Shown here piece by piece: positions 5,665 to 36,306 of a DNA stretch of 64,000 nt. Numbering within the stretch: the stretch's first letter is position 1; each line of letters opens with the position of its first letter. A program made the translations under genes and the position numbers. The stretch spans positions 1 through 64,000 of IMG/VR virus record IMGVR_UViG_3300031576_000001; one strand, 5' to 3'. Under the pieces are notes generated by a model. It was not told where the DNA came from and did not search any database. It was given only the letters and a program-made list of their open reading frames with translations.

Positions 5665-5701
5665 GCCAGCAGCGAAATTGATGCCTTCGGGCGTTGAGCA
5701 C
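5665..5701 (+). CRISPR. Solitary CRISPR repeat-like unit (I-B/Myxan-like)
   Basis: TGATGCCTTCGGGCGTTGAGCAC matches the repeat core at 52796-52831; flanked by near-identical ~20-nt direct repeats (5660-5680 and 5702-5721). Confidence 0.6.
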
Positions 5702-15399: not shown

Positions 15400-15586
15400 G
15401 CCCCAACCGCTTGGGTGAGGAGGCGCCGTTGCCCATTCCTTCTGACTGTACGCCACCACCCAGAGGCACGTTGCGATGGACACTGTGCCTTGCACCCAGG
15501 AGCACCAGTGGTGGTACCAACAGTAGAGGACCAACGCTACCAGGGCATAAGCACAACCCCCTAGCAGAGACCACGCTAGTTTTGTC

Positions 15587-19037: not shown

Positions 19038-19180
19038 GGGAAGGTAGCTCAGGTCAGAAGAGCACCGGAACGAAAGCACTCTCAAAAAAACATCCTCCCG
19101 GCTCGCGCTGGGACGGTCAAACTGAGGGTTACTTCACCATAAACCGTTGGTCGGTGGTGCAAATCCACCCCTTCCCACCC
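19038..19180 (+). ncRNA. tRNA(CAT)-Y-RNA hybrid 1 (bulged-helix module inserted in the anticodon loop)
   Basis: Acceptor GGGAAGG/CCTTCCC, D arm, T arm GGTGG-TGCAAAT-CCACC; insert CACTCTC..CATCCTCCC-loop-GGGACGGTCA..GAGGGTTACTTC placed before CATAA. Confidence 0.75.
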
Positions 19181-19207
19181 AACTTGACTTTCTCATCAGT
19201 ACACACG

Positions 19208-19285
19208 GGTTCCTTCATCTAAACGGACTAGGAGACCCTTGCTAACGCGAGGAGGATGTACGTTCAAATCGTACAGGAACCACTA
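19208..19285 (+). ncRNA. tRNA-like RNA with an extended anticodon stem closed by a TAAC tetraloop
   Basis: Acceptor GGTTCCT/AGGAACC, T arm GTACG-TTCAAAT-CGTAC; CTTGC-TAAC-GCGAG replaces the 7-nt loop. Confidence 0.65.
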
Positions 19286-19286
19286 A

Positions 19287-19356
19287 GGCGGGCAGTCAAC
19301 CGGCAAGGGTTACTTCACCACTAACGAAAAACACCTTTGCCACCACACCTCCCGCC
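19287..19356 (+). ncRNA. Minimal Y-RNA-like RNA
   Basis: GGCGGG-C-AG-TCA..GGCAAGGGTTACTTC..GAA..CCTTTGCC..CT-CCCGCC. Confidence 0.75.
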
Positions 19357-19363
19357 TACTTAT

Positions 19364-19494
19364 TGCAGTGTAGCTCGACGGTAGAGCACGCATGACGCCC
19401 TGAGCGTCAACCTCCCCAGCTAACGCCGGGGCAGTCATTGCATAGGGTTACTCCCATAAGCAGGACGAGGCGGGGCGTAGTCCCTCCACTGCAA
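19364..19494 (+). ncRNA. tRNA(CAT)-Y-RNA hybrid 2
   Basis: Acceptor TGCAGTG/CACTGCA, D arm TAGCTCGACGGTAGAGC; insert AACCTCCCC-loop-GGGGCAGTCA..TAGGGTTACTCC placed before CATAA; degenerate T loop. Confidence 0.7.
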
Positions 19495-19515
19495 CTTCTA
19501 CGACTTTCAGCCGCG

Positions 19516-19541
19516 AACCTCTCTCAACCAGGAGCAGTCAC
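19516..19541 (+). promoter_or_regulatory. Y-motif-like bulged hairpin covering the Shine-Dalgarno of the Ro60 gene
   Basis: AAC-CT-CTCT-caacca-GGAG-C-AG-TCA-C-ATG has the same geometry as the ncRNA motif. Confidence 0.5.
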
Positions 19542-21101
19542 ATGGGCCAATCCAAGTCGCACAAGAACTTCATGGCGGGCACGAGCTACACAGTCTCGCC
19601 CCTACTCACCCTTCGTATCGCAGCGGCGTCGTGCTTCTTCGGGGAGCCCACGTTCTACGGAGCCAAGGACAGCAAGCCGGTCGCGCCCTCCCAGCAACCC
19701 CAAGCGGTACAGAAGCACCTGAGTGTAACCCTCGGGGGTCTGGGGCAACCTGACTTCTCGGGGCTCACGCCCTCTCAGCGCATGGAGAAGGTCATTGACA
19801 ACGCGCTCGACGCGGACCCCGAGGCTACCCTCCAAGAGGCGGTTCTGCTCCGTAAGCAGGGTCACATTCGTACCACGCCCCAGGTCATCATGGTCCGGGC
19901 GGCGCGTCACCCCAAGGTGAGGGGCACGGGGCTCATCCGGCAGTACGCACCCAACATCCTGTCCAGGGGGGATGAGTCAGCGGTACAACTCAAGTACCTC
20001 AGCAACCTAACGGGCAAGGGGCCCATCCCCAACGCCCTCAAGAAGGCGTGGGCTGCTCACCTCTCGGGCATGAATGAGTACACGCTGGCCAAATACGCCA
20101 AGGACGGGCTGACCGACGTGGCGAACGTGTGTCACCCCGCAGGCAACCCTCTCTTGGAGAAGCTGGTCAAGGGCAAGCTCTCTCAGGGGGGCTCGACTTG
20201 GGAAGCCATCGTGAGCAAGGATGGCTCGACCAAGGAGGCATGGTCCAAGGCGGTCTCCGTCATGGGGCACATGGCGCTCCTACGCAACCTGCGCAACTTC
20301 CACGAGAAGGGCGTAGACCCCGCCGTCTACCTGGACAAGCTGGTGAACACCGCCAAGGACGGCAAGCAATTGCCGTTCCGCTACTGGTCCGCTTACAACG
20401 CCCTATCCGAGGGGAGCGCTACCACGCGGCAAGCCATCGAGGAGTGCTTGAAGAACTCGCTGGGTTTCCTGCCCTTCTTCAAGGGTAAGGTCGCGTCCCT
20501 CTGCGACAACTCAGGTTCCGCGGTGTCTGCCCGGGTGTCGTGCATGAGCGACGTGAACGTGGCGACCATTGCCAACCTCTCGGCGCTTCTCACGGGCTAC
20601 CAGTCGGACGAGGGCTGGGTCGGGCTCTTTGGGGACCGGCTTACGATGCGCCAGGTGGACCGCAGCAAGGCGCCCCTGGCTCAGCTTGCCGCTCTGAACG
20701 TGCTGGGTAAGCAGGTAGGCGGCTACACGGAGAACGGGATTTGGCTCTTCTGGGACGAGGCGATCCGCACCAAGAAGCACTGGGATCACGTTTTTGTCTA
20801 CAGCGACATGCAAGCCGGTCACGGTGACTTGTACGGCTCAGACCCGAGCCAATACAAGGCTTTCCAGTGGGTTCAGAACCCCAGCCACATTGACGTGGCT
20901 CGTCTCATCGGAGCCTACCGCGCCAGCGTGAACCCGAAGGTCAACGTGTTCCTGGTTCAGTGCGCGGGCTACGCAGACGCGATCCTGCCCGAGGAGTACT
21001 ACCGCACCAGCATCCTCGGCGGCTGGGGTGACGGTATCTTCCACTACGCGGACCAGATGACCCGTCTCTTTGACGGTCTGGACGCTTCGCAAGCAACTTG
21101 A
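19542..21101 (+). CDS. Ro60/Rsr-like TROVE-domain RNA-binding protein with a C-terminal vWA domain
   Basis: FFGEPTFY, YTLAKY, TWEAIVS, MGHMALLRNLRN, KQLPFRYWSAY, MIDAS-like DNSGS, VYSDMQ. Confidence 0.93.
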   Translation: MGQSKSHKNFMAGTSYTVSPLLTLRIAAASCFFGEPTFYGAKDSKPVAPSQQPQAVQKHLSVTLGGLGQPDFSGLTPSQRMEKVIDNALDADPEATLQEAVLLRKQGHIRTTPQVIMVRAARHPKVRGTGLIRQYAPNILSRGDESAVQLKYLSNLTGKGPIPNALKKAWAAHLSGMNEYTLAKYAKDGLTDVANVCHPAGNPLLEKLVKGKLSQGGSTWEAIVSKDGSTKEAWSKAVSVMGHMALLRNLRNFHEKGVDPAVYLDKLVNTAKDGKQLPFRYWSAYNALSEGSATTRQAIEECLKNSLGFLPFFKGKVASLCDNSGSAVSARVSCMSDVNVATIANLSALLTGYQSDEGWVGLFGDRLTMRQVDRSKAPLAQLAALNVLGKQVGGYTENGIWLFWDEAIRTKKHWDHVFVYSDMQAGHGDLYGSDPSQYKAFQWVQNPSHIDVARLIGAYRASVNPKVNVFLVQCAGYADAILPEEYYRTSILGGWGDGIFHYADQMTRLFDGLDASQAT

Positions 21102-21163
21102 CGCTTGCGTGTAGCTGCAACGACGGTCTGGACGCCCAGACCCCGTTACAAGATATCCCTCCC

Positions 21164-21209
21164 GTGCTACGTGTACCTCGCAGTCAGTTCAGGGTACACG
21201 TAGCACTTT
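21164..21209 (+). terminator. 14-bp perfect hairpin followed by TTT (terminator or processing stem)
   Basis: GTGCTACGTGTACC / GGTACACGTAGCAC. Confidence 0.5.
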
Positions 21210-21279
21210 CCCGGTTCGTTCAGTGGTAGGACAGGATGTTTTGGTTATCCTTACCGTGGTTCGATTCCACGACCGGGGG
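21209..21279 (+). tRNA. tRNA-Gln(TTG)
   Basis: Cloverleaf; anticodon loop TTTTGGT; TTCGATT T loop. Confidence 0.8.
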
Positions 21280-21280
21280 C

Positions 21281-21949
21281 TCATACAAACTGAGGCGTAG
21301 CAGACAGGGCTGAGGCTAACTTGCTCAGCCGCTTGTCGATGGCCTCGTATTCGCGCACCACGTTGCGTTCTGCGTAGGAGAGGTCAGACGAGGGGATCTG
21401 TTTCAGAACCTCCATGATGCCGGCCCTGTTACGCATAACGTCCCGGTTGGCGAAGAACTCTAGCTCGTCCGCCAGACCCTCAAACTTGCGTAGCGTGACC
21501 GCCAGACCGAGAAGGGTAGCCTTGACCGCTGCGATCTCCTTCTCAGCCGATCCGCCCAGCTTGTAGGTTATGTCGTCGAAAGCCTTCTGGGGAAAGTAGT
21601 TCCGAGGGTCTCTCAGTTGATCCAGGGTTTGGTTCTGAAAAGTTCCCCAGTAGACGCCTCCCGTGCCCTGCTCGACCTTGGCTGTGCCTCCAAAGGTACC
21701 AGGGACCGTCTGACCGCGAGACTGCACGTCCAACGCAAAGAAAAAGTTGGGTGTGTACTCACCCGGGGTGTCTAGCCACCAAGAGAAGTTAACCCCCATG
21801 ACGGTTTTGTGTCCACCTCGATACTCGCAGGCTAGCCCGCTCTTTTGCGTGAAGTAGGCAGCGTAAGCCTTACCAGCCCGCCCCATCAGGCGCCCCACGT
21901 CAGCGAGAGGGTTGGCGCCAGCCGCGCCACGGTCGTAATTGTAGGTCAT
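21281..21949 (-). CDS. Hypothetical protein
   Basis: Long ORF; likely start MTYNYDR at 21949. Confidence 0.7.
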   Translation of the reverse strand: MTYNYDRGAAGANPLADVGRLMGRAGKAYAAYFTQKSGLACEYRGGHKTVMGVNFSWWLDTPGEYTPNFFFALDVQSRGQTVPGTFGGTAKVEQGTGGVYWGTFQNQTLDQLRDPRNYFPQKAFDDITYKLGGSAEKEIAAVKATLLGLAVTLRKFEGLADELEFFANRDVMRNRAGIMEVLKQIPSSDLSYAERNVVREYEAIDKRLSKLASALSATPQFV

Positions 21950-22139
21950 GGTTTCCAAGAGCGACGGGGACAAGACCCTTACAGGGGCACGCGACACCCT
22001 CTCAGAGGTTTGCGAAGCATTGTGCGTCATCCATGGTGACGCGATGCGTCAAAGACCCGAAGGTGGGTGGGTGTGCTACCCATGTGAGGCAGAAGAAAAA
22101 CAAACCCGTCAGGAAGCCTGTACAAAACTTGTCTATCCC

Positions 22140-22248
22140 GGTGTAGCAAGATACAGTAGCCGAGAACCCGCCGGCAGTTGAGGTAGGGTCGGAGCTACAG
22201 ACCGAGCGAGGTTCCCTTAGATGGGAGCGTGGTTCCTTGACAACTGAA
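22140..22248 (+). promoter_or_regulatory. tRNA-array leader: GGTGTA promoter motif, hairpin, and boxA-like GTTCCTTGACAACTGAA
   Basis: 22232-22248 resembles the rrn-leader boxA (GTTCTTTGAAAACTGAA) and lies immediately before the first tRNA. Confidence 0.55.
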
Positions 22249-22255
22249 ACCTTTT

Positions 22256-22335
22256 CTAGCTCACGTAGCTGGTGCTACAGGCGGTCTGTAAAACCGCTGT
22301 CCATGACATGCGGGGTTCGATTCCCCGGGGCTAGG
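22256..22335 (+). tRNA. tRNA-Tyr(GTA)
   Basis: GCGGT-CTGTAAA-ACCGC; variable arm present. Confidence 0.8.
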
Positions 22336-22339
22336 CTGA

Positions 22340-22412
22340 CAAGCTGTAGGCGCAAGGAGTGCTACCAGCATGGAATGCTGGGGGTGTGTAGGTCATATCT
22401 ACACCGGCTTGT
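22340..22412 (+). tRNA. Atypical tRNA, anticodon GGA (Ser?), short variable arm
   Basis: CCAGC-ATGGAAT-GCTGG; degenerate T loop. Confidence 0.5.
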
Positions 22413-22415
22413 CAA

Positions 22416-22515
22416 TCGAGGAAGCCACAGGCGTGGCCTTTGGGGGTGATACCCTGAAGCGGGGTGTGCAGTGTGCATAACTGGGCACCAGCGGGTCCGA
22501 TTCCCACTCCTCGGG
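22416..22515 (+). ncRNA. Atypical tRNA-like RNA with a long extra arm
   Basis: CGAGGA/TCCTCG acceptor; GGG-TCCGATT-CCC T arm. Confidence 0.45.
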
Positions 22516-22555
22516 CTTGTACCGTGCTCACCGGGGCTATACGGTGAGGTTTTAT

Positions 22556-22628
22556 CCGCGCAAATCCTTGGTGGTCTAGGTACCTGTCTGATATACAGGC
22601 GATGGGAGTTCGACTCTTCCTGCGCGGA
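22556..22628 (+). tRNA. tRNA-Ile(GAT)
   Basis: CCTGT-CTGATAT-ACAGG. Confidence 0.8.
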
Positions 22629-22630
22629 CT

Positions 22631-22703
22631 GTGGCCGGTGGTTGCATGGTGCGACCGTCTAACTGTGAATTAGACTTCAGAGGGTTCGATTCCCTTCGGT
22701 CAC
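22631..22703 (+). tRNA. tRNA-His(GTG)
   Basis: TCTAA-CTGTGAA-TTAGA. Confidence 0.8.
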
Positions 22704-22929
22704 TCTGGCGTGCCTAGGGCACGTCTTACGCTTTCCGTTCCGGCTTGAAAGTCTTGGGCTGCGCGCGTACACCCAAGAGGAGTAGAGAGAGGGAGACTCT
22801 AACCAGATTGATCCTCTGGTGTACATCTGAAAAGAGGGGAGACCTGTGTGCGAGTCACAGGGAGGGCACTAGTCGAGAGCAGTGTTGAATGGTTCAGCGA
22901 GGGAGAGGATGCCCGACTGCCCGACGAAT

Positions 22930-23001
22930 TCCGAGGTTGTCAACGGTAGGGCGACCACACTGTTACTGTGGTGTTTGCAGGTCCGACTCCTGCCCTCGGA
23001 G
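22930..23001 (+). tRNA. tRNA-Asn(GTT)
   Basis: CCACA-CTGTTAC-TGTGG. Confidence 0.75.
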
Positions 23002-23303
23002 CCCGGTACGCGGAAGGGGTAAGCGATGCCTCTTCGTGCGTGCCTGAGATTACGTGCTCTAGTTCAACGCTAGAACAACGTCACTGGCTCGTCGTGGGCC
23101 GGCGTGTAGATGCAACGCACGGTGTGCTCCGCGCTAGCCTTTGGTTAGTTGCACAGACTACCCTTTGGTTTGACACCCAAAGGTGGCCCGTCTTGGACAA
23201 GACAGGGGTATCTCACCCCTCGGAGTCCCATGAGGATGACGAAATCAGAACCGGCGGAGGCTGTGTTTACACGGTCGAAGAAACCGGGGACGGAGAGAAC
23301 TAT

Positions 23304-23376
23304 GCCACCCAAGCACATCTGGTGATTGCAGTCCCCTGAAGAGGGAAACGGCCCGGTTCGATCCCGGGGGGTGGCA
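23304..23376 (+). tRNA. tRNA-Phe(GAA)
   Basis: TCCC-CTGAAGA-GGGA. Confidence 0.8.
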
Positions 23377-23449
23377 CTACGGGCGACAAGACTTGTGGTT
23401 CGAGTCCACACTGATTCTTCTGAGAGACGAAGGGTCGGGTAACGGATAA

Positions 23450-23523
23450 CAGCGTGAAGTCTTATGGCGAGACGCCAGTTCGGGGAACTGGAGATCGGAG
23501 GTTCAATTCCTCTCACGCTGACC
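23450..23523 (+). tRNA. tRNA-Pro(GGG)
   Basis: CCAGT-TCGGGGA-ACTGG. Confidence 0.75.
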
Positions 23524-23597
23524 GCGGAAGAGTGGCACGGTTCCATAGCTGGCTCATACCCAGAATACATTCAGTTCAACTCTGATTTCCGCCACCA
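23523..23597 (+). tRNA. tRNA-Met(CAT)
   Basis: CTGG-CTCATAC-CCAG; encoded CCA end. Confidence 0.75.
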
Positions 23598-23607
23598 GTG
23601 AAGACAT

Positions 23608-23684
23608 TGCGGCGTGGAGCAGCCTGGAAGCTCGCAAGGCTCATAACCTTGAGGTCGTCGGTTCAAATCCGACCGCTCGCGACA
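23608..23684 (+). tRNA. tRNA-fMet-like (CAT)
   Basis: GTGGAGCAGCCTGGAAGCTCG...CTCATAA...GGTCGTCGGTTCAAATCCG is close to bacterial initiator tRNA. Confidence 0.85.
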
Positions 23685-23685
23685 A

Positions 23686-23790
23686 AGAGTGTAGTCAAAG
23701 AAGAGGGTTACTTCCTCTAGTAAGAGAAACCTGACGGTTCGATTCCGTCCCGGCGTGGTCGCCATACACTCTCTTCGTTCATCTCACTCT
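23686..23790 (+). ncRNA. YrlA-like Y RNA with an internal T arm
   Basis: AGAGTG-T-AG-TCA..GAAGAGGGTTACTTC..GACGG-TTCGATT-CCGTC..CTCTCTTC..CT-CACTCT. Confidence 0.8.
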
Positions 23791-23793
23791 CTA

Positions 23794-23867
23794 TCCTCGG
23801 TAGCTCAAGTGAAGAGCACCTCCTGTTTACAGGGGTTGATGCTAGGTTCGATGCCTAGCCCTTGGGC
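23794..23867 (+). ncRNA. tRNA-like RNA with an expanded anticodon arm (CTG-TTTA-CAG)
   Basis: Canonical D and T arms; imperfect acceptor stem. Confidence 0.55.
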
Positions 23868-23917
23868 AATCCGTGATGGGGCAACTCGGGCAACAGGGTA
23901 CCCAGCACGGTCGTATT

Positions 23918-23986
23918 GTGCAAGAGTCAAGGCGACAACGTGGTTTCCAAATCCACGGAAGGTGGGTTCGATTCCTCCCTTGCACG
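23918..23986 (+). tRNA. tRNA-Trp(CCA)
   Basis: CGTGG(T)-TTCCAAA-(T)CCACG. Confidence 0.65.
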
Positions 23987-23988
23987 CT

Positions 23989-24088
23989 AGGTGTAGTCAA
24001 GCCCAGAGGTTCATCATACAATAGATGCTGGCTCCCTTGCGAGAGCCAGCACCCCGTACCAAACCACCTCTTGGTAACAATCTCACCT
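23989..24088 (+). ncRNA. Y-RNA-like RNA
   Basis: AGGTG-T-AG-TCA..AGAGGTTCATC..internal hairpin..ACCTCT..CT-CACCT. Confidence 0.7.
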
Positions 24089-24093
24089 TTTCT

Positions 24094-24113
24094 GGCGTCG
24101 TGGCTCAGTGGTT
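24094..24113 (+). pseudogene. 5' fragment of a tRNA disrupted by the HNH insertion
   Basis: GGCGTCGTGGCTCAGTGGTT ends at the HNH promoter. Confidence 0.55.
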
Positions 24114-24134
24114 GGGCCGGTGTATGCACATCTT

Positions 24135-24500
24135 ATGGCTGAATCAGAGCTTGTGACTTGTTGTGGTAAGACAATACAAAAGAGGCACCTCAAGACGCAC
24201 TTGAGGCTCAAGCACAAAGACTTCTCTCTCATACGTAGGGACTCAACACGGAGAGAGCGCCTTATTGTTGAGAGGGGGCATCGTTGTCAGGTGTGTGGCA
24301 TGTCTGAATGGATGGGCGTCAACATACCCATTGAGCTTGACCATACTGATGGCAATTGTGAAAACAATACGAGGGAGAACTTGAGGCTAATATGCCCCAA
24401 TTGCCATGCCCAAACTCCGACCTATCGGGGTAAGAATATGGGTAAAAGTGGGCATACCAAGCGAGCGACTATACTGAAGAAGTATGGTAGTTATCGTTGA
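24135..24500 (+). CDS. HNH homing endonuclease
   Basis: CQVC...ELDHTDGNCENNTRENLRLICPNCHAQT; lower GC; GGTGTA 10 nt upstream. Confidence 0.9.
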   Translation: MAESELVTCCGKTIQKRHLKTHLRLKHKDFSLIRRDSTRRERLIVERGHRCQVCGMSEWMGVNIPIELDHTDGNCENNTRENLRLICPNCHAQTPTYRGKNMGKSGHTKRATILKKYGSYR

Positions 24501-24503
24501 TTC

Positions 24504-24574
24504 GGTGCCGTAGCTTGAAGGTCAAGCCAGGAGCTTTTAACTCTTAGTTGAGGGTTCGATTCCCTCCGGCGCCA
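24504..24574 (+). tRNA. tRNA-Lys(TTT)
   Basis: AGGAG-CTTTTAA-CTCTT. Confidence 0.8.
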
Positions 24575-24632
24575 CGAGGCTCGGGATACTTTTTGCAGCC
24601 TGCAATAGTGTTCACAACCTGAGCCTTACTAG

Positions 24633-24706
24633 GGGAGTCTAGTTGGTCTGGTGACCGCGCTTGCTTCATAAGCAAGTTTAGAAGGGTTCGATCCCCTTGG
24701 CTCCTA
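24633..24706 (+). tRNA. tRNA-Met/Ile2(CAT)
   Basis: CTTGC-TTCATAA-GCAAG. Confidence 0.7.
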
Positions 24707-24834
24707 CGAGCTGAACCTGCGAGGGTCCGGCTAATTTGCCCTGGCGACGGGGTAGGGGTTGCCCCGAGAGTGTCTTGGTACACAACGGCGGCGTTGATGG
24801 TTCAGCCTCAGACTCGACCCATGGGGCATTACAA

Positions 24835-24905
24835 GGGGTTATCGTCCAAAGGCAGGACGGCAGATTTGCATTCTGCAAATTTCGGTTCGAGTCCGAATTA
24901 CTCCA
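24835..24905 (+). tRNA. tRNA-Cys(GCA)
   Basis: GCAGA-TTTGCAT-TCTGC arm. The loop can also be read with TGC central, so the anticodon call is tentative. Confidence 0.6.
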
Positions 24906-24913
24906 CGACAGAT

Positions 24914-24986
24914 CAGGGAGAAGCCCTATGGTGGGGCGCCAGTTTCGGGAACTGGAACTTCGCGAGTTCAATTCTCGCCTCCCTGA
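24914..24986 (+). tRNA. tRNA-Pro(CGG)
   Basis: CCAGT-TTCGGGA-ACTGG. Confidence 0.8.
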
Positions 24987-25063
24987 CTATGGGTGCGTCT
25001 CTTAGGACGCCAGGGTCGCCTGGTACCTTGACACACCCGTTACGTGACTTACCGTCACGTTTC

Positions 25064-25153
25064 GCCCTGGTAGCTCAACTACGAGAGCGCCCCTGTAGTG
25101 TCCCCAGGGACCAACAGGGGAGGTTGGAGGTGCAAATCCTTCCCCGGGCCCCA
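25064..25153 (+). ncRNA. tRNA-like RNA whose anticodon arm is replaced by a long hairpin; CCA end
   Basis: CCCCTGT..GTCCC-CA-GGGAC..ACAGGGG lies between normal D and T arms. Confidence 0.65.
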
Positions 25154-25158
25154 TGTTT

Positions 25159-25233
25159 GCCAACGTAGCCCAACTAGGTAGAGGCAACTGCCCGAGGCGC
25201 AGTACAGTGAGAGTCCGAATCTCTTCGTTGGTA
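25159..25233 (+). tRNA. tRNA-Leu(GAG), short variable arm
   Basis: ACTGC-CCGAGGC-GCAGT. Confidence 0.7.
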
Positions 25234-25243
25234 CTTGATAAAG

Positions 25244-25314
25244 CGTGCTGTTTCCCTTGGAGGGTGGGCGGTCTTCTAAACCGCTACGTGTGTGTTCAAT
25301 TCTCACCAGCACGA
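25244..25314 (+). tRNA. tRNA-Arg(TCT)
   Basis: GCGGT-CTTCTAA-ACCGC. Confidence 0.7.
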
Positions 25315-25317
25315 CAA

Positions 25318-25389
25318 TGCGTGGGCGTCCCGGGGACAACAGAGGCTTTGACCCTCTGGAAAAAGGTTCGACTCCTTTCTCGCGTACCA
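25318..25389 (+). tRNA. tRNA-Gln(TTG)
   Basis: AGAGG-CTTTGAC-CCTCT; CCA end. Confidence 0.75.
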
Positions 25390-25452
25390 AGGTGTAGTCA
25401 CTCAGAGGGTTACTTCGGCAAGAACAGGCACCCTCTAAACTCTATCTCACCT
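25390..25452 (+). ncRNA. Minimal Y-RNA-like RNA
   Basis: AGGTG-T-AG-TCA..AGAGGGTTACTTC-GGCAA-GAA..ACCCTCT..CT-CACCT. Confidence 0.75.
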
Positions 25453-25458
25453 TCCAAT

Positions 25459-25529
25459 GGAACCGTAGCTCTAAGGCAGAGCACGACGCTCTTAACGTCA
25501 GGGTCAGGGTTCGATTCCCTGTGGTTCCA
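25459..25529 (+). tRNA. tRNA-Lys(CTT)
   Basis: GACG-CTCTTAA-CGTC. Confidence 0.8.
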
Positions 25530-25612
25530 CGATAGGAGCAGTCACTTGAGTAGGCAGGTGAGAGCAGACGTGCTTAGGGTCGCCAGACGCAACCCTCTGT
25601 TTTTGCTTACAA

Positions 25613-25688
25613 CGCGCAAACGTCTCTGGTGGGGCAAACAGCCTGACGTGCTGTTCTTGGACGGGTTCGATTCCCTCTTGCGTGACCA
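25613..25688 (+). tRNA. tRNA-Val(GAC)
   Basis: ACAGC-CTGACGT-GCTGT; CCA end. Confidence 0.7.
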
Positions 25689-25724
25689 GCGTAAAGCCCT
25701 ATGGTGGGGCGCTTGCTTTGGGTA
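25687..25724 (+). pseudogene. 5' half of tRNA-Pro(TGG) truncated at the anticodon loop by the HNH insertion
   Basis: CAGCGTAAAGCCCTATGGTGGGGCGCTTGCTTTGGGT has the same D arm as tRNA-Pro(CGG) at 24914. Confidence 0.7.
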
Positions 25725-25761
25725 CGTGGCACGCTCCTGTGCGTTCAGTCATACTAACTGC

Positions 25762-26208
25762 GTGAGTACCAGCAAGTGCTTCAAGTGTAAGTTGACCCTA
25801 CCTACAAGCGAGTTTTCCATTCGCCCCAACGGGAAGCCTACGAGCTACTGTAAAACTTGCCAACGGAGTGCATCTAAAGCCCACTACCAAGCAAACAAGA
25901 CAGCGCACAATCAACGGCGTTGGGCAAGTATTATAAAGTATCGTGATAACGTGACTTCTCACGTTATAAAGATCAAAGAAGGTAGTCCGTGTGTGGACTG
26001 CCACGAGTACCACCCGTACTGGGCTATGGACTTTGACCACCGCGACCCCGCAAACAAAGAGTTCTGTATAGGGCAAGCGGTAAACTTTGGCTACTCACTT
26101 AGTCGTGTGGACGCAGAGATCGCAAAGTGCGACCTTGTTTGCGCGCTGTGCCACAGGTACAGAACTTACGGTCAGCGCAGAAACTTCCGGGTTGTAGCCA
26201 AAAGGTGA
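25762..26208 (+). CDS. HNH-family homing endonuclease
   Basis: CFKC..CKTC zinc finger; CVDC...MDFDHRDP..K...EIAKCDLVCALCHR. Confidence 0.85.
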   Translation: MSTSKCFKCKLTLPTSEFSIRPNGKPTSYCKTCQRSASKAHYQANKTAHNQRRWASIIKYRDNVTSHVIKIKEGSPCVDCHEYHPYWAMDFDHRDPANKEFCIGQAVNFGYSLSRVDAEIAKCDLVCALCHRYRTYGQRRNFRVVAKR

Positions 26209-26259
26209 GGCACCTGTTTTGGGAACAGGTTAATGGCAGTTCGAGTCTGCTCAACCCGA
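26188..26259 (+). tRNA. tRNA-Pro(TGG)
   Basis: CCTGT-TTTGGGA-ACAGG; overlaps the HNH stop codon. Confidence 0.8.
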
Positions 26260-26271
26260 CTTACTATAGTA

Positions 26272-26335
26272 CAGCGTGTGCTCATGGTTACGGGAGTACA
26301 GGAACCAGGGGGTCCGATTCCCTCTACGCTGACCA
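26272..26335 (+). ncRNA. 64-nt truncated tRNA-like RNA (acceptor and T arm, CCA end, single middle hairpin)
   Basis: CAGCGTG/TACGCTG-ACCA; GGGGG-TCCGATT-CCCTC. Confidence 0.55.
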
Positions 26336-26447
26336 GGGTGCCTTTGCTAGTGGAGTGACCTCCCCCAACTCCAACCTCTGCTAGTGACTGCGCGCCCTAT
26401 TCTATACACATTAGGCTGGAACCCATCATTTCAGTCTAATGAGCTAA

Positions 26448-26520
26448 CCCGTTGAAGTCCTCTGGTGGGGACACCACATTGTCAATGTGGCCTTGGCGAG
26501 TTCAATTCTCGTCAGCGGGA
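26448..26520 (+). tRNA. tRNA-Asp(GTC)
   Basis: CCACA-TTGTCAA-TGTGG. Confidence 0.75.
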
Positions 26521-26676
26521 CTACCTGTACCCAACAGTCTCTTCCTACACGCTACTCTACTTCCTGGTTCGATTCCAGGGCACTGCACCTCACGGACAGC
26601 AGAGCTAGCCTAACGGTAAAGGCATTCGTTTTACCAACGGACACTCAACGGAGAGGCAACTCGGGCACGGTAACAT

Positions 26677-26756
26677 GCAGACGTGGTGTAACGGTAGCCA
26701 CGGTGGTCTTAGAAGCCACTGCCTAAAGCGTAGGGGTTCGACTCCCCTCGTCTGCA
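26677..26756 (+). tRNA. tRNA-Leu(TAG)
   Basis: GTGGT-CTTAGAA-GCCAC; variable arm present. Confidence 0.85.
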
Positions 26757-26781
26757 CAAGCCATCGGTGTAAGGTATTCAC

Positions 26782-27210
26782 ATGCAAGCTCTAGCGCTCA
26801 TCGTTTCCGTAGTGGCAGCCTTGGTTGTCATGGCGTTCGTTTCTGAGTCGGGTTCGAGGCTCCGCACGTTTAGTTTGGGGTGCCTCATGGCTCTCGGGGG
26901 CGTTCTCTTCTACGCCCTGCTCACGGTGTACCCCTTCATGGTGGGGTGGAACTGGCTCATGCCGGGGGTCTTTGGGTTGAAGACTCTGGACTTCTGGCAA
27001 GCCTTGGTGCTCATCCTCCTGGCGGGTGTGTTGTTCCACTCTGGGGCTGTTAGCACCAAGAGCGACTTAGGGTTTGTTAGACACAACCCCCTCTTTGCAA
27101 AGAGGGAACACGCTAACGTATTCCAACGGCAGAGAAAGCGGCCTCAGATACCGCAAAGTGTGGGTTCGAGTCCCACCGTTAGCACTGTGAGTCTGTTGGA
27201 AGACTACTAG
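26782..27210 (+). CDS. Small membrane protein
   Basis: Three hydrophobic segments; WNWLMPGVFGLKTLDFWQAL; GGTGTA 10 nt upstream; 3' end runs over a tRNA. Confidence 0.65.
   Translation: MQALALIVSVVAALVVMAFVSESGSRLRTFSLGCLMALGGVLFYALLTVYPFMVGWNWLMPGVFGLKTLDFWQALVLILLAGVLFHSGAVSTKSDLGFVRHNPLFAKREHANVFQRQRKRPQIPQSVGSSPTVSTVSLLEDY
27112..27184 (+). tRNA. tRNA-Leu(CAG), short variable arm
   Basis: GCGG(C)-CTCAGAT-(A)CCGC. Confidence 0.75.
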
Positions 27211-27302
27211 AAAGCAAGACCATTTGGGGGCGTGTATCCCGCATGCTCCCCCCCTCAGATCAAAACCAAAGCAAGGTGGTCCCCGGATAGAGTTTTCCTT
27301 CT

Positions 27303-27378
27303 GCTCCCGTCGTCTAAAGGTAGGTACACTGGGTTCTCAACCCAGAAATGGCGAGTTCAATTCTCCCCGGGAGTACCA
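27303..27378 (+). tRNA. tRNA-Glu(CTC)
   Basis: CTGGG-TTCTCAA-CCCAG; CCA end. Confidence 0.85.
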
Positions 27379-27388
27379 CACACAACTT

Positions 27389-27463
27389 GTCTCCGATGCT
27401 CAATGGAAGGGCGCGTGTCTACGGAACACGTATTTGAGAGTTCGAGTCTCTCCGGGGATGCCA
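27389..27463 (+). tRNA. tRNA-Arg(ACG)
   Basis: CGTGT-CTACGGA-ACACG; CCA end. Confidence 0.85.
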
Positions 27464-27470
27464 GACACAA

Positions 27471-27542
27471 GCCCTTACGGTGCGATGGACGCACACGACC
27501 CTCCGAAGGTCGTCCGTGTCGGTTCGATTCCGACTAGGGGCT
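27471..27542 (+). tRNA. tRNA-Arg(CCG)
   Basis: CGACC-CTCCGAA-GGTCG. Confidence 0.8.
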
Positions 27543-27588
27543 CTCTGCGGTGTATGTCAGCATTGGTTGGCAATACTCTTTCAGTCTT

Positions 27589-27675
27589 GGAACTTGACGG
27601 CTCAATGGTGAGGCCACTAGTCTTGAAAACTAGCTACACCCGAGAGGGTGAGGGGTTCGATTCCTCCTGGTTCCT
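27589..27675 (+). tRNA. tRNA-Ser(TGA)
   Basis: CTAGT-CTTGAAA-ACTAG; long variable arm. Confidence 0.85.
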
Positions 27676-27684
27676 CTGTGTGTT

Positions 27685-27770
27685 GGAAGGCAGAGCCTCA
27701 TGGTGAGGCGCGAGCGTGCTAAGCTCGGTCTAGTCCTCTTGGGACTGTGGTTCGATTCCACTACCTTCCG
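27685..27770 (+). tRNA. tRNA-Ser(GCT)
   Basis: CGAGC-GTGCTAA-GCTCG; long variable arm. Confidence 0.8.
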
Positions 27771-27773
27771 CAA

Positions 27774-27857
27774 GTGCGTAGTCACGAGAGACGGTTACTT
27801 CAACAAAACTGGTGAAATTACCCCCGCAAGGGGGACCGTAGCTCAACAATCTCGCAT
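27774..27857 (+). ncRNA. Y-RNA-like RNA
   Basis: GTGCG-T-AG-TCA..GACGGTTACTTC..GAA..CCCC-GCAA-GGGG..ACCGT..CT-CGCAT. Confidence 0.75.
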
Positions 27858-27865
27858 GATTCTAC

Positions 27866-27941
27866 GCTAGCGTAGCCCAACTAGGCAGAGGCAGCGCACT
27901 CAAAACGCGCAAAGGTGAGGGTCCGAGTCCCTCGGCTAGCA
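27866..27941 (+). tRNA. tRNA-Leu(CAA), short variable arm
   Basis: GCGC(A)-CTCAAAA-(C)GCGC. Confidence 0.75.
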
Positions 27942-27989
27942 CTCAAGACCACAGAGAGGGTGTCTTGTAGACGTACTCGCTCTGGTTTA

Positions 27990-28061
27990 GCTCCCATCGA
28001 CTACTGGCTAGGTTATCGGTTTTTCACACCGAGGGACGGAGATCGATACTCCGTGGGAGCA
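27990..28061 (+). tRNA. tRNA-Glu(TTC)
   Basis: TCGGT-TTTTCAC-ACCGA. Confidence 0.8.
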
Positions 28062-28066
28062 CTTTT

Positions 28067-28139
28067 GCCACGCTAGTCCTCTGGGGAGGGCGCTTGCTTT
28101 ACACGCAAGATTAGCAGGGTTCGATCCCCTGGCGTGGTA
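28067..28139 (+). tRNA. tRNA-Val(TAC)
   Basis: CTTGC-TTTACAC-GCAAG. Confidence 0.8.
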
Positions 28140-28182
28140 CCGAGAGGGGGGCACGGTGTTCCTGTGTAACTCTCTCGACTCT

Positions 28183-28255
28183 GGGTTCTGAGCCGCAAAG
28201 TGTGGCAGTGTGACTGTTAATCCACCGAAGCTGGGCGCGATTCCCAGAGAGCCCT
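28183..28255 (+). tRNA. tRNA-Asn(GTT), divergent
   Basis: Anticodon loop CTGTTAA; GGGTTCT/AGAGCCC acceptor. Confidence 0.6.
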
Positions 28256-28264
28256 CTGGTTACT

Positions 28265-28359
28265 GGTCCTTAAGTTGTACCCCCCTTGGTAACCCAAGCG
28301 TGGGGAGGGGACGCTTGCTGTAGTAGGCAAGGCAGGTTCGACCCCTGCGGGACCAACCA
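28265..28359 (+). ncRNA. Atypical tRNA-like RNA with an elongated D region; CCA end
   Basis: TGGTCCT/GGGACCA-ACCA; GCAGG-TTCGACC-CCTGC. Confidence 0.55.
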
Positions 28360-28366
28360 CTTTCAA

Positions 28367-28431
28367 TCCCAGGTCGTCTAAGGGTAAGGCGATTGACTTT
28401 GACTCGATGTCCCTGTGGGTTCGAGTCCCTC
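28367..28431 (+). pseudogene. tRNA-Gln(TTG) lacking the 3' acceptor strand
   Basis: ATTGA-CTTTGAC-TCGAT and the T arm are present, but there is no CCTGGGA; it abuts the HNH. Confidence 0.6.
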
Positions 28432-29122
28432 TACTCCTACTCGTTCCCGGTTTGCTTCGTAAGTGCGAACCCATTGGCGTATACAGTTATCAGAGACGCC
28501 GTACTTGACCCCGACTGCCACGAAAGAGGACTCCTCTATGTCTTTTTTCAGTGTATCAAAAGTAGGTCTAACCACCTTGCGTCTATGGAATTGTGGCTCT
28601 CTATTAGTGAAGAAGCATTTTCTACCACAGTACTTCTTCCCTAGTGGTGCTTGGTTGAAACATCTTTTGCTGGCGCACTTGGACCTCCTACGTTTACCGC
28701 AATGGGTGGGGAGCGTAGCGTTACAATTTGGGCATACAATGCGTAGGTTCTCCAACCTGTGGTCATTACGCACCCCATTGATCTGATCCAAGATTAGGGC
28801 CATTTTACATCCATTCCAAATCTCGCCTTGACCACAAAGCTCACACTCTCGTCTTTAGGCCCTCCTTGTACAACCTCTCCTTAATGTGTGTTGTGGTGTA
28901 CTTGCTCCCTTCTACAAGTATTTGTTCTATGGGGGCCGCAACAGGAATACAATTTCTCGTCCCGAAGTGAGACGTGTCTGCTCCTAGAGATTCGTAGTGT
29001 TCACGGACTTTCACTCTTGTCTTCATGCAACCCCTAGCAAATCCTAGCCGGTACATAACGTCTGAGAGAGACGAAGCAGCAGCTACTACTTTCAACAAGT
29101 CCTCGTCTGTGTATCGTGCCAT
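28378..29122 (-). pseudogene. Degenerate HNH homing endonuclease (frameshift near 28845; catalytic His apparently replaced by Gln)
   Basis: LKTRV* continues in another frame as ECELCGQGEIWNG...LILDQING..NDHRLENLRIVCPNC. Confidence 0.75.
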
Positions 29123-29136
29123 GTGTGCAGTATTAG

Positions 29137-29207
29137 TCCCGGTTCGTCTAACGGCAAGACAATTCGCTCTGAACGAAAGAACAGTGGTTCGATTCCATTA
29201 CCGGGAA
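29137..29207 (+). tRNA. tRNA-Gln(CTG)
   Basis: TTCG-CTCTGAA-CGAA. Confidence 0.85.
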
Positions 29208-29284
29208 CCGAGACCAGACCTCTCCTTCTACGAGGGGTCGGTGAGCTTTGGTGGCGCGTCACAGTGGCTTGCCAGGTCTCTCTT

Positions 29285-29355
29285 GGGGTTGTAAGTCAAC
29301 GGGAGACTGGTGCCCTTGCAAGGCACAAATGAGGGTTCGATTCCCTCCGACTCCA
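29285..29355 (+). tRNA. tRNA-Ala(TGC)
   Basis: GTGCC-CTTGCAA-GGCAC; G3-U70 pair. Confidence 0.85.
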
Positions 29356-29362
29356 CTAGTGC

Positions 29363-29433
29363 GCTGTGCTCGTCTAACGGTAAGCCGCCACATTGGTATT
29401 GTGGGAATTCGGGTTCAACTCCCGGGCACAGCT
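29363..29433 (+). tRNA. tRNA-Thr(GGT)
   Basis: CCACA-TTGGTAT-TGTGG. Confidence 0.85.
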
Positions 29434-29439
29434 CTCTTT

Positions 29440-29511
29440 GCGACATTGAGCCAAAGGCTGGTTACGACCTTGCCAAGGTCGGTTATGGGGGTTCGAGTCC
29501 CCCATGTCGCT
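29440..29511 (+). tRNA. tRNA-Gly(GCC)
   Basis: CGACC-TTGCCAA-GGTCG. Confidence 0.8.
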
Positions 29512-29512
29512 C

Positions 29513-29629
29513 AGGTCTCTGGCAGAAGCCAAGACACGCCAGGATTCTAGACACTTCTGGCGTGTCTCCGGTGGAAATTGCGCCCCCGTAGCTACGGGGT
29601 GTATACTGGTTCAAATCCAGTGGGGCCTA
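29513..29629 (+). ncRNA. tRNA-like RNA with two long non-canonical arms
   Basis: GGTCTC/GGGGCC acceptor; AGACACGCCAG/CTGGCGTGTCT stem; ACTGG-TTCAAAT-CCAGT T arm. Confidence 0.6.
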
Positions 29630-29634
29630 CTAAT

Positions 29635-29705
29635 GCGGCTCTCGTTCAAAGGCAGGATGAGAGTTTTCCAAACTCATGATCAGGGTTCGATTCCCTGGAG
29701 CCGCA
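29635..29705 (+). tRNA. tRNA-Gly(TCC)
   Basis: GAGT-TTTCCAA-ACTC. Confidence 0.8.
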
Positions 29706-29841
29706 CTCCATGAAACGTGCTCTCTTTTCATCGTGCAAAGGCCCTGCAAACCACAGCAACAAGGCTTGTGTCTGTGGGGCGCACTCTCGCAAGGCGCGTG
29801 ATAAGCGTCTACGGTGGTCCAGGGCGCGGGTTGTATCTGAA

Positions 29842-29913
29842 GGGGTTGTAGTCCAACGGAAAGACGCAGCGTCGGCAACGCTGAAATAGCGGGTTCGATT
29901 CCCCTCTACTCCA
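29842..29913 (+). tRNA. tRNA-Ala(GGC)
   Basis: CAGCG-TCGGCAA-CGCTG; G3-U70 pair. Confidence 0.75.
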
Positions 29914-30099
29914 CAACACAGGCGCACCAAAGTACACGGGGCGTGTGTGCAGTCCGTAAAGGCAGTAGGTAGGAGACTACTCATGTTCCTGCCCTGACGC
30001 GTTGGTACTCCGTACCTAACCAGGGTGTTGGCCCGTTCAATTCGGGTCTAGGGGGAGCGTGGACGTGTGGTGTAGGGCAGCACAGTACGGGCGAGTTTT

Positions 30100-30172
30100 T
30101 GACGTGGCGTCAAGGCTGACACAGCCGTCTGCAAAACGGCTTGACTATGGGGTTCGAGTCCCCTCTACGTCT
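30100..30172 (+). tRNA. tRNA-Cys(GCA)
   Basis: GCCGT-CTGCAAA-ACGGC. Confidence 0.75.
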
Positions 30173-30176
30173 CTCT

Positions 30177-30254
30177 GGGCATGGTCAGCGATTACTCAAA
30201 GTAAGGGAAGTCCTAAATCGCGTGGAGAGGGTGCGACTCCCTCCTTGTCCACCA
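30177..30254 (+). ncRNA. Atypical tRNA-like RNA with a CCA end
   Basis: GAGGG-TGCGACT-CCCTC T arm; ACCA end; no canonical anticodon arm. Confidence 0.5.
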
Positions 30255-30255
30255 C

Positions 30256-30633
30256 GGGGATGAATTGGCTTCGATCAGGGCTAAGCATTCTCACTCGCAG
30301 GCGCGCTTTTCCTGGCCGTAGCGCTAAAAGAAGCTGGGGACCGACAACTGCCAACGACAACGTTGAAGCTGCTCCTCTCGCCCTCGCGGCGTTAGGTGGT
30401 TGGGGTGGGCTAGATACCCTTAGTAACCCCCTCGACTCAAAAGTGACCAAGGGTGCGCTGCCCGACGACGCGCTGTAAGAGTAGGGTGGCTAAGAGCGAG
30501 TTTACAGACATGGCCAGGCGTGACCTTGGAAACCCACCTCTCAGGGGAGACTGTAGAGAGGAAAGCCTGTAAACATAGAGAGTGGGCGATCTTTACTCTG
30601 AGACCGCGGGATCGAACCCGCGCATCTCCACCA
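30256..30633 (+). ncRNA. ssrA: tmRNA
   Basis: GGGGATG..GGCTTCGA 5' end, CATCTCC-ACCA 3' end with G3-U70, T arm, and tag frame ANDNVEAAPLALAA from 30350. Confidence 0.95.
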
Positions 30634-30729
30634 ACTGTTTCGTAATTATGCGAAACGCCCCGTCACCTAGAGACCTTGTTTGGCAGTCGGTACCCGCGTT
30701 CCGACTCTCTTGGTGGCGGGTACCCTTTT

Positions 30730-30800
30730 GCCCCTGTAGCTCAATAGAAGAGCAGTAGCCTTGTAACCTACCGACGACGGTGCAATCCCGTCCTGGGGCT
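30730..30800 (+). tRNA. tRNA-Thr(TGT)
   Basis: GTAG(C)-CTTGTAA-(C)CTAC. Confidence 0.8.
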
Positions 30801-30808
30801 CTCAGAAT

Positions 30809-30880
30809 GGACTGCGACGGTCTGGTTGACCTGCGACAGCTTATATCTGTTTTGTCAGGGTTCAATTCCCTGGCAGTCCA
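30809..30880 (+). tRNA. tRNA-Ile(TAT)
   Basis: ACAG-CTTATAT-CTGT. Confidence 0.75.
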
Positions 30881-31182
30881 CTGTGCTCGTTTGGTTGTGA
30901 GGTCACGGTTGAAAGCACCGGAGTAGCTACCGGTTGAGTAAGCCGTGCCAGTAACAACCTGACTGTCGTGAACGTGACGATGGTTTAGTTGCCCCTCTTC
31001 GATGGGAGGTGTGCGGATCGAAGACGAGCACTTTTCTCGCTGTGCTAGTTCAAAAAGAAGAACTGCGGTCCCGTACCCCGCTAATGACAGTGCAAGTCTG
31101 TCGCACAGCTCCAAGGGTGAGCGTATCGACAATCACCTACAGGTACACCCCGCGAAGATCGCGTAGTGTGTGCGGTAAAGAA

Positions 31183-31255
31183 GCCCCTGTAGTCTAGTGG
31201 AACAGGCTACCGTTTCCTATACGGTCTTACGTAGGTTCGATTCCTACCAGGGGCG
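31183..31255 (+). tRNA. tRNA-Arg(CCT)
   Basis: ACCGT-TTCCTAT-ACGGT. Confidence 0.8.
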
Positions 31256-31476
31256 CACCAAAAAAGGTTTCAGTTGTTAAGTAGAGGTAGGAGGGTCATT
31301 GTGTTTATTCGGCGCGTTGAGTGGTTCTTGCAAACGGTTGACCCTGACGACCGCCTCAAATGGGTCTGCACGCTTGCTTACGTTAGCGTGTGGGTCATTG
31401 TGCTTGTGGCCCTATCCGCAGTACGTCTCATTGCGGACGCTTCTGACCGTCTCTCTGTCTGTCCCCGTGACTAGGG

Positions 31477-34324: not shown

Positions 34325-36306
<1,982 letters not shown>

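Follow-up and report, generated by a model that had tools for sequence, protein, structure and literature searches.

A Ro60-like gene of a jumbo phage is accompanied by seven candidate Y RNAs that share one module and extend into a tRNA array

Results

The Ro60-like gene, the RNA elements and the tRNA array

The DNA analysed here, referred to as the window, makes up the initial 64 kb of a 322.6-kb jumbo-phage contig (IMG/VR record IMGVR_UViG_3300031576_000001). It encodes a TROVE/Ro60-like protein and a large tRNA array, and seven structured RNA elements, E1 to E7, are placed around the gene and within the array on the same strand. From bacteria to humans, Ro60 and Y RNAs have been conserved, and human Ro60 is an autoantigen in lupus and Sjögren syndrome. 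The seven elements share a module in which an outer helix (P1) is followed by one bulged base, a 2-bp step, an internal loop, an inner helix (P2) and a UUACUUC box. We consider it likely that they are the Y RNAs of the phage Ro60 and that each would present this module, of about 45 nucleotides (nt), to the protein as the same docking site. In five copies, called the open form, the ends of the RNA lie in P1; in E1 and E3, called the permuted form, the ends form a tRNA acceptor stem.

The features of the locus are given below; all seven elements were found on the + strand where the original prediction, made from the letters of the window, had placed them. R1 is a covariance model with a seed of relatives plus E2 and E6, so that E4 and E7 are outside the seed, and its E-values for E2, E4, E6 and E7 refer to 64 kb. 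MFE stands for minimum free energy.

19038..19179, +: E1, tRNA-framed RNA with acceptor, D and T arms and the permuted module in the place of the anticodon arm (MFE fold, permuted parse)
19287..19356, +: E2, minimal open form resembling YrlB, with a short A-rich loop (R1 37.7 bits, E 4e-7; MFE z = -5.2; in the seed)
19365..19494, +: E3, tRNA-framed permuted form with acceptor and D arm and no proper T arm (parse, MFE fold)
19542..21101, +: gene for a TROVE/Ro60-like protein of 519 aa, predicted HEAT-repeat ring plus von Willebrand factor A (vWA) domain with a DxSxS MIDAS (metal ion-dependent adhesion site) motif (Pfam, profile, AlphaFold2 model)
21209..31256, +: tRNA array of 38 tRNA genes plus a tmRNA gene, holding E4 to E7 (ARAGORN; Rfam tRNA and tmRNA matches)
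23686..23791, +: E4, open form with a small hairpin, a T-arm (GACGG UUCGAUU CCGUC) and a second hairpin as cargo (R1 35.5 bits, E 1.4e-6; MFE z = -4.0)
23988..24090, +: E5, open form with the degenerate box UUCAUC and a long-hairpin cargo (R1 15.8 bits, E 0.03, obtained with filters off in 16 kb; MFE z = -3.8)
25389..25454, +: E6, minimal open form between tRNA-Gln and tRNA-Lys (R1 40.0 bits, E 1e-7; in the seed)
27773..27859, +: E7, open form with a GNRA-capped hairpin as cargo, between tRNA-Ser and tRNA-Leu (R1 25.7 bits, E 4e-4; MFE fold)

The gene at 19542-21101 is predicted to encode a Ro60-fold protein

The product of the gene at 19542-21101 is predicted to be a Ro60-fold protein. Its TROVE domain was recognized by Pfam (PF05731, E 2e-10, better than the curated cut-off). 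When a profile of the alignment A1, which holds six homologues, was compared with the solved Ro60 structures, it matched Thermus phage phiLo Ro60 (9KOP, E 3e-32), human Ro60 (4e-4) and Xenopus Ro (7e-3). The canonical Rsr of Deinococcus radiodurans was unmatched by the sequence profile of this TROVE clade and was matched by fold only. The AlphaFold2 model (pLDDT 78.7, pTM 0.80) gave full-length Foldseek matches to all solved Ro60s, including D. radiodurans Rsr, with TM-scores of 0.55-0.72, and nothing besides Ro60 structures was found at E <= 0.001. The nearest solved relative is phiLo Ro60 (TM-scores of 0.65-0.72). A vWA domain with a MIDAS that closes the ring is predicted from the alpha/beta fold of the C-terminal half and from the DxSxS residues D322, S324 and S326, which are invariant in A1. 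The clade of the protein includes gp540 of Bacillus phage G (41.5% identity).

Seven copies of one module in the window

The original prediction had described one architecture for all seven elements. It holds as the open form for E2 and E4 to E7, whereas E1 and E3 turned out to be circularly permuted. The 2-bp step is AG/CU (GG/CC in one copy), the internal loop starts with UCA, P2 ends in GG and the UUACUUC box lies 12-14 nt past the AG. The box variants were as described, UUACUCC in E3 and UUCAUC in E5, and the outer helices that had been listed pair in every case. The bulged base, taken to be a pyrimidine, is one in the window, but about half of the wider family has an A there. The cargo of the module does differ between copies; it is absent in some and is a hairpin (GNRA-capped or long), a T-arm or a tRNA frame in others.

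The pattern GTCA-N(2-25)-GGTTMMTY matched the + strand of the window at 19116, 19295, 19434, 23694, 23996, 25397 and 27781. Together with one unrelated minus-strand site this makes 8 matches against 1.2 expected, a number reached in 0 of 100 shuffles. The exact sequence GGTTACTTC occurs five times, always on the + strand and within 19127-27801, where about 0.5 would be expected in 128 kb; with one mismatch allowed, this 9-mer by itself showed no enrichment (18 vs 13.5). The MFE folds of E2, E4, E5 and E7 produced the outer helix, 1-nt bulge, 2 bp, internal loop and inner helix unaided. In the MFE fold of E6 both helices are present and the AG is paired elsewhere; the covariance model gives the 2-bp step. 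The folds of E2, E4 and E5 beat those of all 200 shuffles. A covariance model had been proposed as a check, and R1 found four copies strongly and E5 weakly but did not fit E1 and E3, which are permuted; on E1 this open-form model gave a partial, non-significant match.

The permuted forms were judged by a shuffle test; MAFFT alignments made for a permuted-form covariance model put the helices out of register. In E1 the module (19078-19135) runs from AAAGC through the P2 3' strand, the 3' loop, CC, the P1 3' strand, the UCGC loop that caps P1, the P1 5' strand, a bulged C, GG, UCAAAC and the P2 5' strand to UUACUUC. In E3 the module (19397-19454) has a 4-bp P1, and in both elements the partner strands (UCCC.., CCCC) stand upstream with P1 capped by a loop. 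The permuted parse of E1 scored 34, which was equalled in none of 5000 shuffles. E3 is the weaker permuted copy, with a score of 25 that was reached in 157 of 5000 shuffles (p about 0.03). Neither element was called as a plain tRNA by ARAGORN or by the Rfam tRNA model; E1 was called as a tRNA by ARAGORN after its 88-nt insert had been swapped in silico for a generic anticodon arm.

A possible third mini-helix, of the UUC of the box with a downstream GAA, pairs in the MFE folds of E1 and E2 and is extended in that of E7. Where the box reads UCC, inspection by eye found a corresponding GGA downstream in two of three copies (E3 and locus L004 at 17381; not locus L005 at 9429). Throughout the family, GAA is present in only 117 of 159 A-rich loops; control triplets reach about 60. 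Between E1 and E2 there is a tRNA-like piece (19186-19285) consisting of GGUUCCUUC and a T-arm-like hairpin. It was rejected as a member for lack of P1, wrong spacing and no model match, and it may be a decayed copy.

A wider RNA family linked to TROVE genes

Homologous TROVE genes (38-55% identity) were gathered from 81 viral and 80 bacterial contigs, and one to seven copies of the module were found beside TROVE in nearly all of these loci. The family consensus was drawn from 161 distinct parsed copies. It begins with a P1 of 4-12 bp, a bulge (A in 85, C in 52 and U in 23) and an invariant AG that pairs with CU. The 5' internal loop starts with UGA or CGG(A); UCA is the variant of this phage and its nearest relative. 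There follow P2 ending in GG, (U/A)UACUUC, the cargo, often AAAC-A, the P2 3' strand, a 3' loop ending in (A/U/G)UU, CU and the P1 3' strand. The distance from AG to box is 12 nt in 125 of 161 copies (78%) and 11-13 nt in 98%, and because this spacing is nearly fixed, the module is one rigid unit.

Since the R1 seed was picked by a parser that relies on pairing, covariation statistics of the seed are circular, and three independent controls were used instead. R1 was run at E <= 1e-3 over viral loci totalling 1.46 Mb and bacterial loci totalling 0.64 Mb, on both strands. It gave 116 matches in the 81 phage TROVE loci and 54 in the 80 bacterial ones, and all 170 were on the TROVE strand, for the most part no farther than a few hundred nt from the gene. 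On the TROVE strand the parser recovered 145 full architectures and on the other strand 2, whereas the bare 7-mer was found 626 and 592 times, respectively; 100 of the 145 parsed elements lie no more than 500 nt from TROVE.

In the reverse test, a protein-blind RNA pattern of 20 bases was run over all of IMG/VR and gave 48 new loci. An adjacent TROVE gene on the same strand was present in 26 of them, some of these genes being just 25-32% identical to the query. Among the other 22 loci, 17 had no model match and were chance matches of the pattern, and four of the five model-positive ones end where the gene would be, so that 26 of 27 testable true elements stand beside TROVE. The co-occurrence in phage genomes that had been proposed as a check is thus found as a strand- and position-locked linkage in more than 100 phage and bacterial loci.

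Covariation was evaluated on 49 distinct sequences from the pattern-derived loci. Paired cells made up 92.4%, compared with 64.9% after shuffling and about 50% with slid partners. Double (compensatory) changes were found in 14 of 15 pairs, and both helices covary. In the 2-bp step, the A-U pair was replaced by G-C three times in this set, which confirms the covariation between AG/CU and GG/CC that had been read from the window.

Permuted copies upstream of TROVE were also found in locus L083 and in bacterial metagenome-assembled genomes (MAGs) of Polyangiales, Bradymonadia and Anaerolineae. Four loci of Polyangiales and Bradymonadia carry tRNA-shaped RNAs in which the module replaces the anticodon arm (L086:3790-3925, L098:3800-3935, L096:3655-3790 and L085:3130-3275). 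Two Polyangiales copies (L086, L098) have an encoded CCA 3' end, and a third ends in GCC. Bacillus phage G (L007, NC_023719) has seven module copies around gp540, at 3720-3875, 5192-5886 (five in tandem, upstream) and 11299-11369; none of them is annotated in the record and none was matched by Rfam. L083 carries the closest relative of the TROVE gene (55% identity), with 17 tRNA genes after it, and has the same AG-UCA loop variant. This locus was binned as a MAG of Lysinibacter sp., looks like a related jumbo phage or prophage, and hints at an actinobacterial host. In L006 (3034-4678), every open frame of the TROVE gene is shorter than 300 aa, owing to a frameshift or an assembly error, and four modules lie upstream of it.

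Placement in the tRNA array

Three elements had been claimed to lie directly upstream of TROVE, and E1 to E3 indeed end no more than 500 nt upstream of the gene. E4 to E7 are located 2.6-6.7 kb downstream of it. E4 starts 4 nt past a tRNA-Met, and a weak tRNA-like segment precedes E5. E6 is flanked by tRNA-Gln, which ends at 25389, and tRNA-Lys, which starts at 25459; E7 is flanked by tRNA-Ser, ending at 27771, and tRNA-Leu, starting at 27866 (tRNA calls by ARAGORN). These gaps of 0-6 nt fit the proposed co-transcription with the tRNAs. Release by tRNA-processing enzymes is the obvious route of maturation, although we infer it.

Similar neighbours were found in other loci. An element follows tRNA-Trp flush in the nearest relative, L083, and the order in L033 and L080 is tRNA-Val, element, element, tRNA-Asn. 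In L045 there is a pair of sites (15400-15540 and 15925-16075); one module of the pair encloses a D arm, an anticodon arm and a T arm without an acceptor stem, and the other surrounds an entire tRNA-Pro(UGG)-like sequence, called as a tRNA by ARAGORN. Because the modules of L045 enclose these bodies, the module can evidently flank whole tRNAs. The recurrence of flush copies in L083, L033, L080 and L045 shows that dispersal among tRNAs is a conserved habit and no accident of this genome.

Discussion

Relation to known Y RNAs

Y RNAs beside Ro60 are known in 254 bacteria and 22 phages (PMC4201824). That survey (Chen et al., 2014) kept the best hit within 4 kb and discarded hits that overlapped tandem tRNA genes. 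We consider that the RNA family described here is a divergent branch of the YrlA/YrlB world and no new kind of thing, and that the phage locus is an enlarged, partly rearranged version of the known partnership between Ro60 and Y RNA. The elements are neighbours of a Ro60/TROVE gene on the same strand, and they consist of a covarying stem with bulged helix and internal loop plus a variable distal part, the stem being loop-capped in E1 and E3.

YrlA likewise stands beside Ro60/TROVE on the same strand, and it too is built from a terminal stem that contains an internal loop, another helix and, distally, a tRNA-like domain. Behind this other helix YrlA has a conserved UA that produces the kink seen by crystallography (bioRxiv 10.1101/312249); the UA in UUACUUC is its counterpart. 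The suggested comparison with Rfam YrlA (RF02553) gave no match in the window but sub-threshold scores of 38-43 bits in relatives (gathering score 69). The RNAs with these scores are tRNA-like and neighbour TROVE genes in Acetatifactor muris, Deinococcus xinjiangensis and a Chthonomonadaceae MAG. The YrlA model aligns its own Rsr-binding stem to P1/P2 and takes UUACUUC as an insertion. The box is missing from that model, and the motif of the 5' strand is here N-AG-UCA/UGA/CGG, not GNCGAA; in the Rfam YrlA alignment of L155, the GNCGAA site reads ..CGAUGCG... In contrast to YrlA, whose arms follow each other as T arm, closed acceptor stem-loop and D arm, the window has no copy in this order. 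In E4 a T arm and a hairpin are present without a D arm, and E1 has D then T, the normal order of a tRNA, with open acceptor ends. The arm order of YrlA is present in some relatives (L003, L091, L155).

Ro60 of phage phiLo binds two upstream Y-like RNAs, as determined by electrophoretic mobility shift assay and cryo-electron microscopy; these have a stem-bulge-stem structure with CGAA at nt 10-13 (PMC12135203). In vitro it forms a ternary complex with host polynucleotide phosphorylase (PNPase) (PMC12135203; PDB 9KOP, 9L5Y). Yrl1 and Yrl2 of phiLo resemble our elements in being Y-like RNAs directly upstream of a phage Ro60 gene, and their CGAA motif is placed as the 5' internal loop is in our family. 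Judged by position only, the RNAs would be homologous. They differ in number, two compared with seven, and neither copies in a tRNA array nor permuted forms have been described for phiLo. Having several Y RNAs per Ro60 is shared with the systems of Salmonella Typhimurium YrlB and D. radiodurans Yrn1. E2 and E6, like YrlB, have little beyond the binding stem, but there is no detectable sequence similarity to YrlB or Yrn1. Metazoan Y RNAs (RF00019) have a comparable layout: their ends pair in a stem with one bulged pyrimidine and a 2-bp step, beyond which come an internal loop, an upper stem and a variable distal loop to which other proteins bind. They differ by the conserved GGUCCGA/UUGACC, by the absence of an Rfam match to our elements, and by being RNA polymerase III transcripts bound by La.

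Four things are new. One is a sub-family, or module, beyond the recognition of Rfam YrlA. The second is its high copy number, seven in this phage as in phage G. The third is the presence of copies flush with tRNAs, which would mature within tRNA arrays. The last is the occurrence of permuted forms in tRNA order with free acceptor ends, some of them bearing CCA, which are the converse of the 'circularly permuted tRNA' of YrlA.

Interpretation and alternative explanations

The interpretation given in the original prediction is supported as a whole, and its idea of one Ro scaffold with many adaptors fits an invariant module with variable cargo. Direct binding, and a purpose in tRNA protection, repair or decoying, we infer only. 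Several points weigh against the reading of the seven elements as Y RNAs. When Rfam was run on the window (gathering threshold and E <= 10), no family, including YrlA, Y_RNA and Vault, matched any element. The literal YrlA motif GNCGAAN0-1G is absent, the window copies having G-Y-AG-UCA at that place. E3 and E5 are statistically weak and are the weaker members of the seven. No conserved partner gene (PNPase, RtcB or other) was found beside TROVE among about 160 loci, where the commonest neighbour family was thioredoxin (17 of about 160). Finally, a cis-acting role on the TROVE mRNA is also conceivable for the three upstream copies.

Alternatively, the module may be a cis-regulatory element, the upstream copies lying in the TROVE 5' leader for autoregulation and the array copies being by-products of duplication. 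The distance of E1 to E3 from the gene, without a terminator-like site ahead of it, would suit such a role, and so would the fact that most family members are within 500 nt of TROVE, chiefly upstream. However, many loci have elements downstream of TROVE or several kb off between tRNAs, a terminator-like U run closes some bacterial copies, as in free-standing genes, and tRNA-frame cargo with encoded CCA ends argues for stand-alone RNAs. We regard cis-regulation as improbable in place of a stand-alone role, while the two roles are not mutually exclusive. About equally improbable is that the RNAs are linked genetically to TROVE but dock another protein, for example host tRNA enzymes or a nuclease, through the box or the tRNA-like parts. 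TROVE is the sole gene that consistently co-occurs with the module. The bulged helix, 2-bp step and internal loop match the layout of the known Ro60 site, and the fixed spacing of 12 nt ties the box to this Ro60-like site as a rigid unit. What speaks for docking of another protein is that the metazoan Ro60-binding helix lacks anything like the UUACUUC box, that this box is an insertion in the Rfam YrlA model, and that no conserved neighbour protein indicates a specific partner.

Four copies abut tRNAs and several bear pieces of a T-arm or D-arm, as might be expected if the elements were decayed tRNA genes or structured spacers that guide processing of the array, with no relation to TROVE. But the module stands beside TROVE in loci that have no tRNAs (L002, L003, L021) and in bacterial chromosomes, the reverse search recovered TROVE in 26 of 27 testable cases, and the conserved parts are not tRNA-like. 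The linkage data already contradict this explanation, and we give it hardly any chance.

A plausible mechanism for Y RNAs of this kind is as follows. The RNAs would be transcribed together with the TROVE mRNA and the tRNAs on long transcripts, and RNase P and the 3'-processing enzymes, in trimming the flanking tRNAs, would release the array copies. Each RNA would bind the Ro ring via its module. The cargo would gate the ring, merely so in E2 and E6, or tether it to a partner, which might be a PNPase-like exonuclease, perhaps as in RYPER, or tRNA-handling enzymes in the case of tRNA-like cargo. Because no partner gene is conserved beside TROVE, the partners are probably host proteins. The outcome would be a set of ribonucleoproteins for RNA surveillance or counter-defence in infection, and its purpose might be to check the quality of the phage's 38 tRNAs, to deal with cleaved tRNAs or to blunt host RNA decay.

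If so, the locus offers a natural series in which one ring protein meets seven RNAs with an identical docking module and a cargo graded from nothing to a full tRNA frame, and the Y RNA as an interchangeable adaptor becomes a directly testable hypothesis. The work defines a large TROVE-linked RNA sub-family whose rigid, covarying module suits structural work, and the cultured Bacillus phage G, with its seven copies, provides a laboratory system. Y-like RNAs would be able to mature as members of tRNA arrays, in loci that the design of the earlier survey dropped (PMC4201824). In view of the forms in tRNA order, some of them CCA-ended in bacterial relatives, it is possible that some Y RNAs are treated as tRNAs.

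Similarity to vault RNAs

A string search of the literature with the box returned human vault RNAs. Human vtRNA1-1, 1-2 and 1-3 read ..AGCUCAGCGGUUACUUCG.. (PMC10087102). The box GGUUACUUCG, present at 19127-19135 of the window and throughout the family, is identical to a segment of these RNAs. In these human members of the vertebrate vault RNA family (RF00006), GGUUACUUCG lies right 3' of a helix strand ending in GG, just after box A, and is followed by a variable part and the T-arm-like box B (PMC10087102); moreover, TEP1, the partner on which vault RNAs depend, has a TROVE domain. However, the likeness is limited to about 11 nt, which scored 6.4 bits in a profile test, a value that about 2 in 3000 shuffles reach. 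The 3' half is unmatched, the spacing from AG to box is 8 nt, not 12, and no Rfam Vault (RF00006) match was found at E <= 5-10. It is doubtful that the box after a GG-ending helix strand is an ancient TROVE recognition element and that vault RNAs and Y-like RNAs are homologous. If this were true, the contact between TEP1 and vault RNA could be read off the bacterial system. GGUUA may instead be a relic of the tRNA D-loop in both vault RNAs and Y-like RNAs.

Other features of the window

A blastn search with the locus of the E elements and TROVE against 50,697 phage records gave no match. The tmRNA gene in the tRNA array (30256-30633) was detected by Rfam (52.8 bits) and was uncalled by ARAGORN; a tmRNA is also near TROVE in L004, L005 and phage G. 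Rfam alone detected a strong tRNA segment at 30730-30800 (54.3 bits) and weak tRNA-like segments at 23918-23985 and 28371-28439, so the array exceeds the 38 tRNAs called by ARAGORN. Two open reading frames (ORFs) inside the array, 24108-24500 and 25693-26208, have no Pfam match, and in some related loci (L056) an HNH endonuclease is encoded at a comparable spot beside TROVE. Among the ORFs of the window that were scanned, no gene for RNA repair was seen. A ribonucleotide reductase gene (38973-41855) is split by an intein-like LAGLIDADG homing-endonuclease insert, and genes for GroEL (34708-36306), ClpP (32004-32624), a RecD-like helicase and RecA are located near it.

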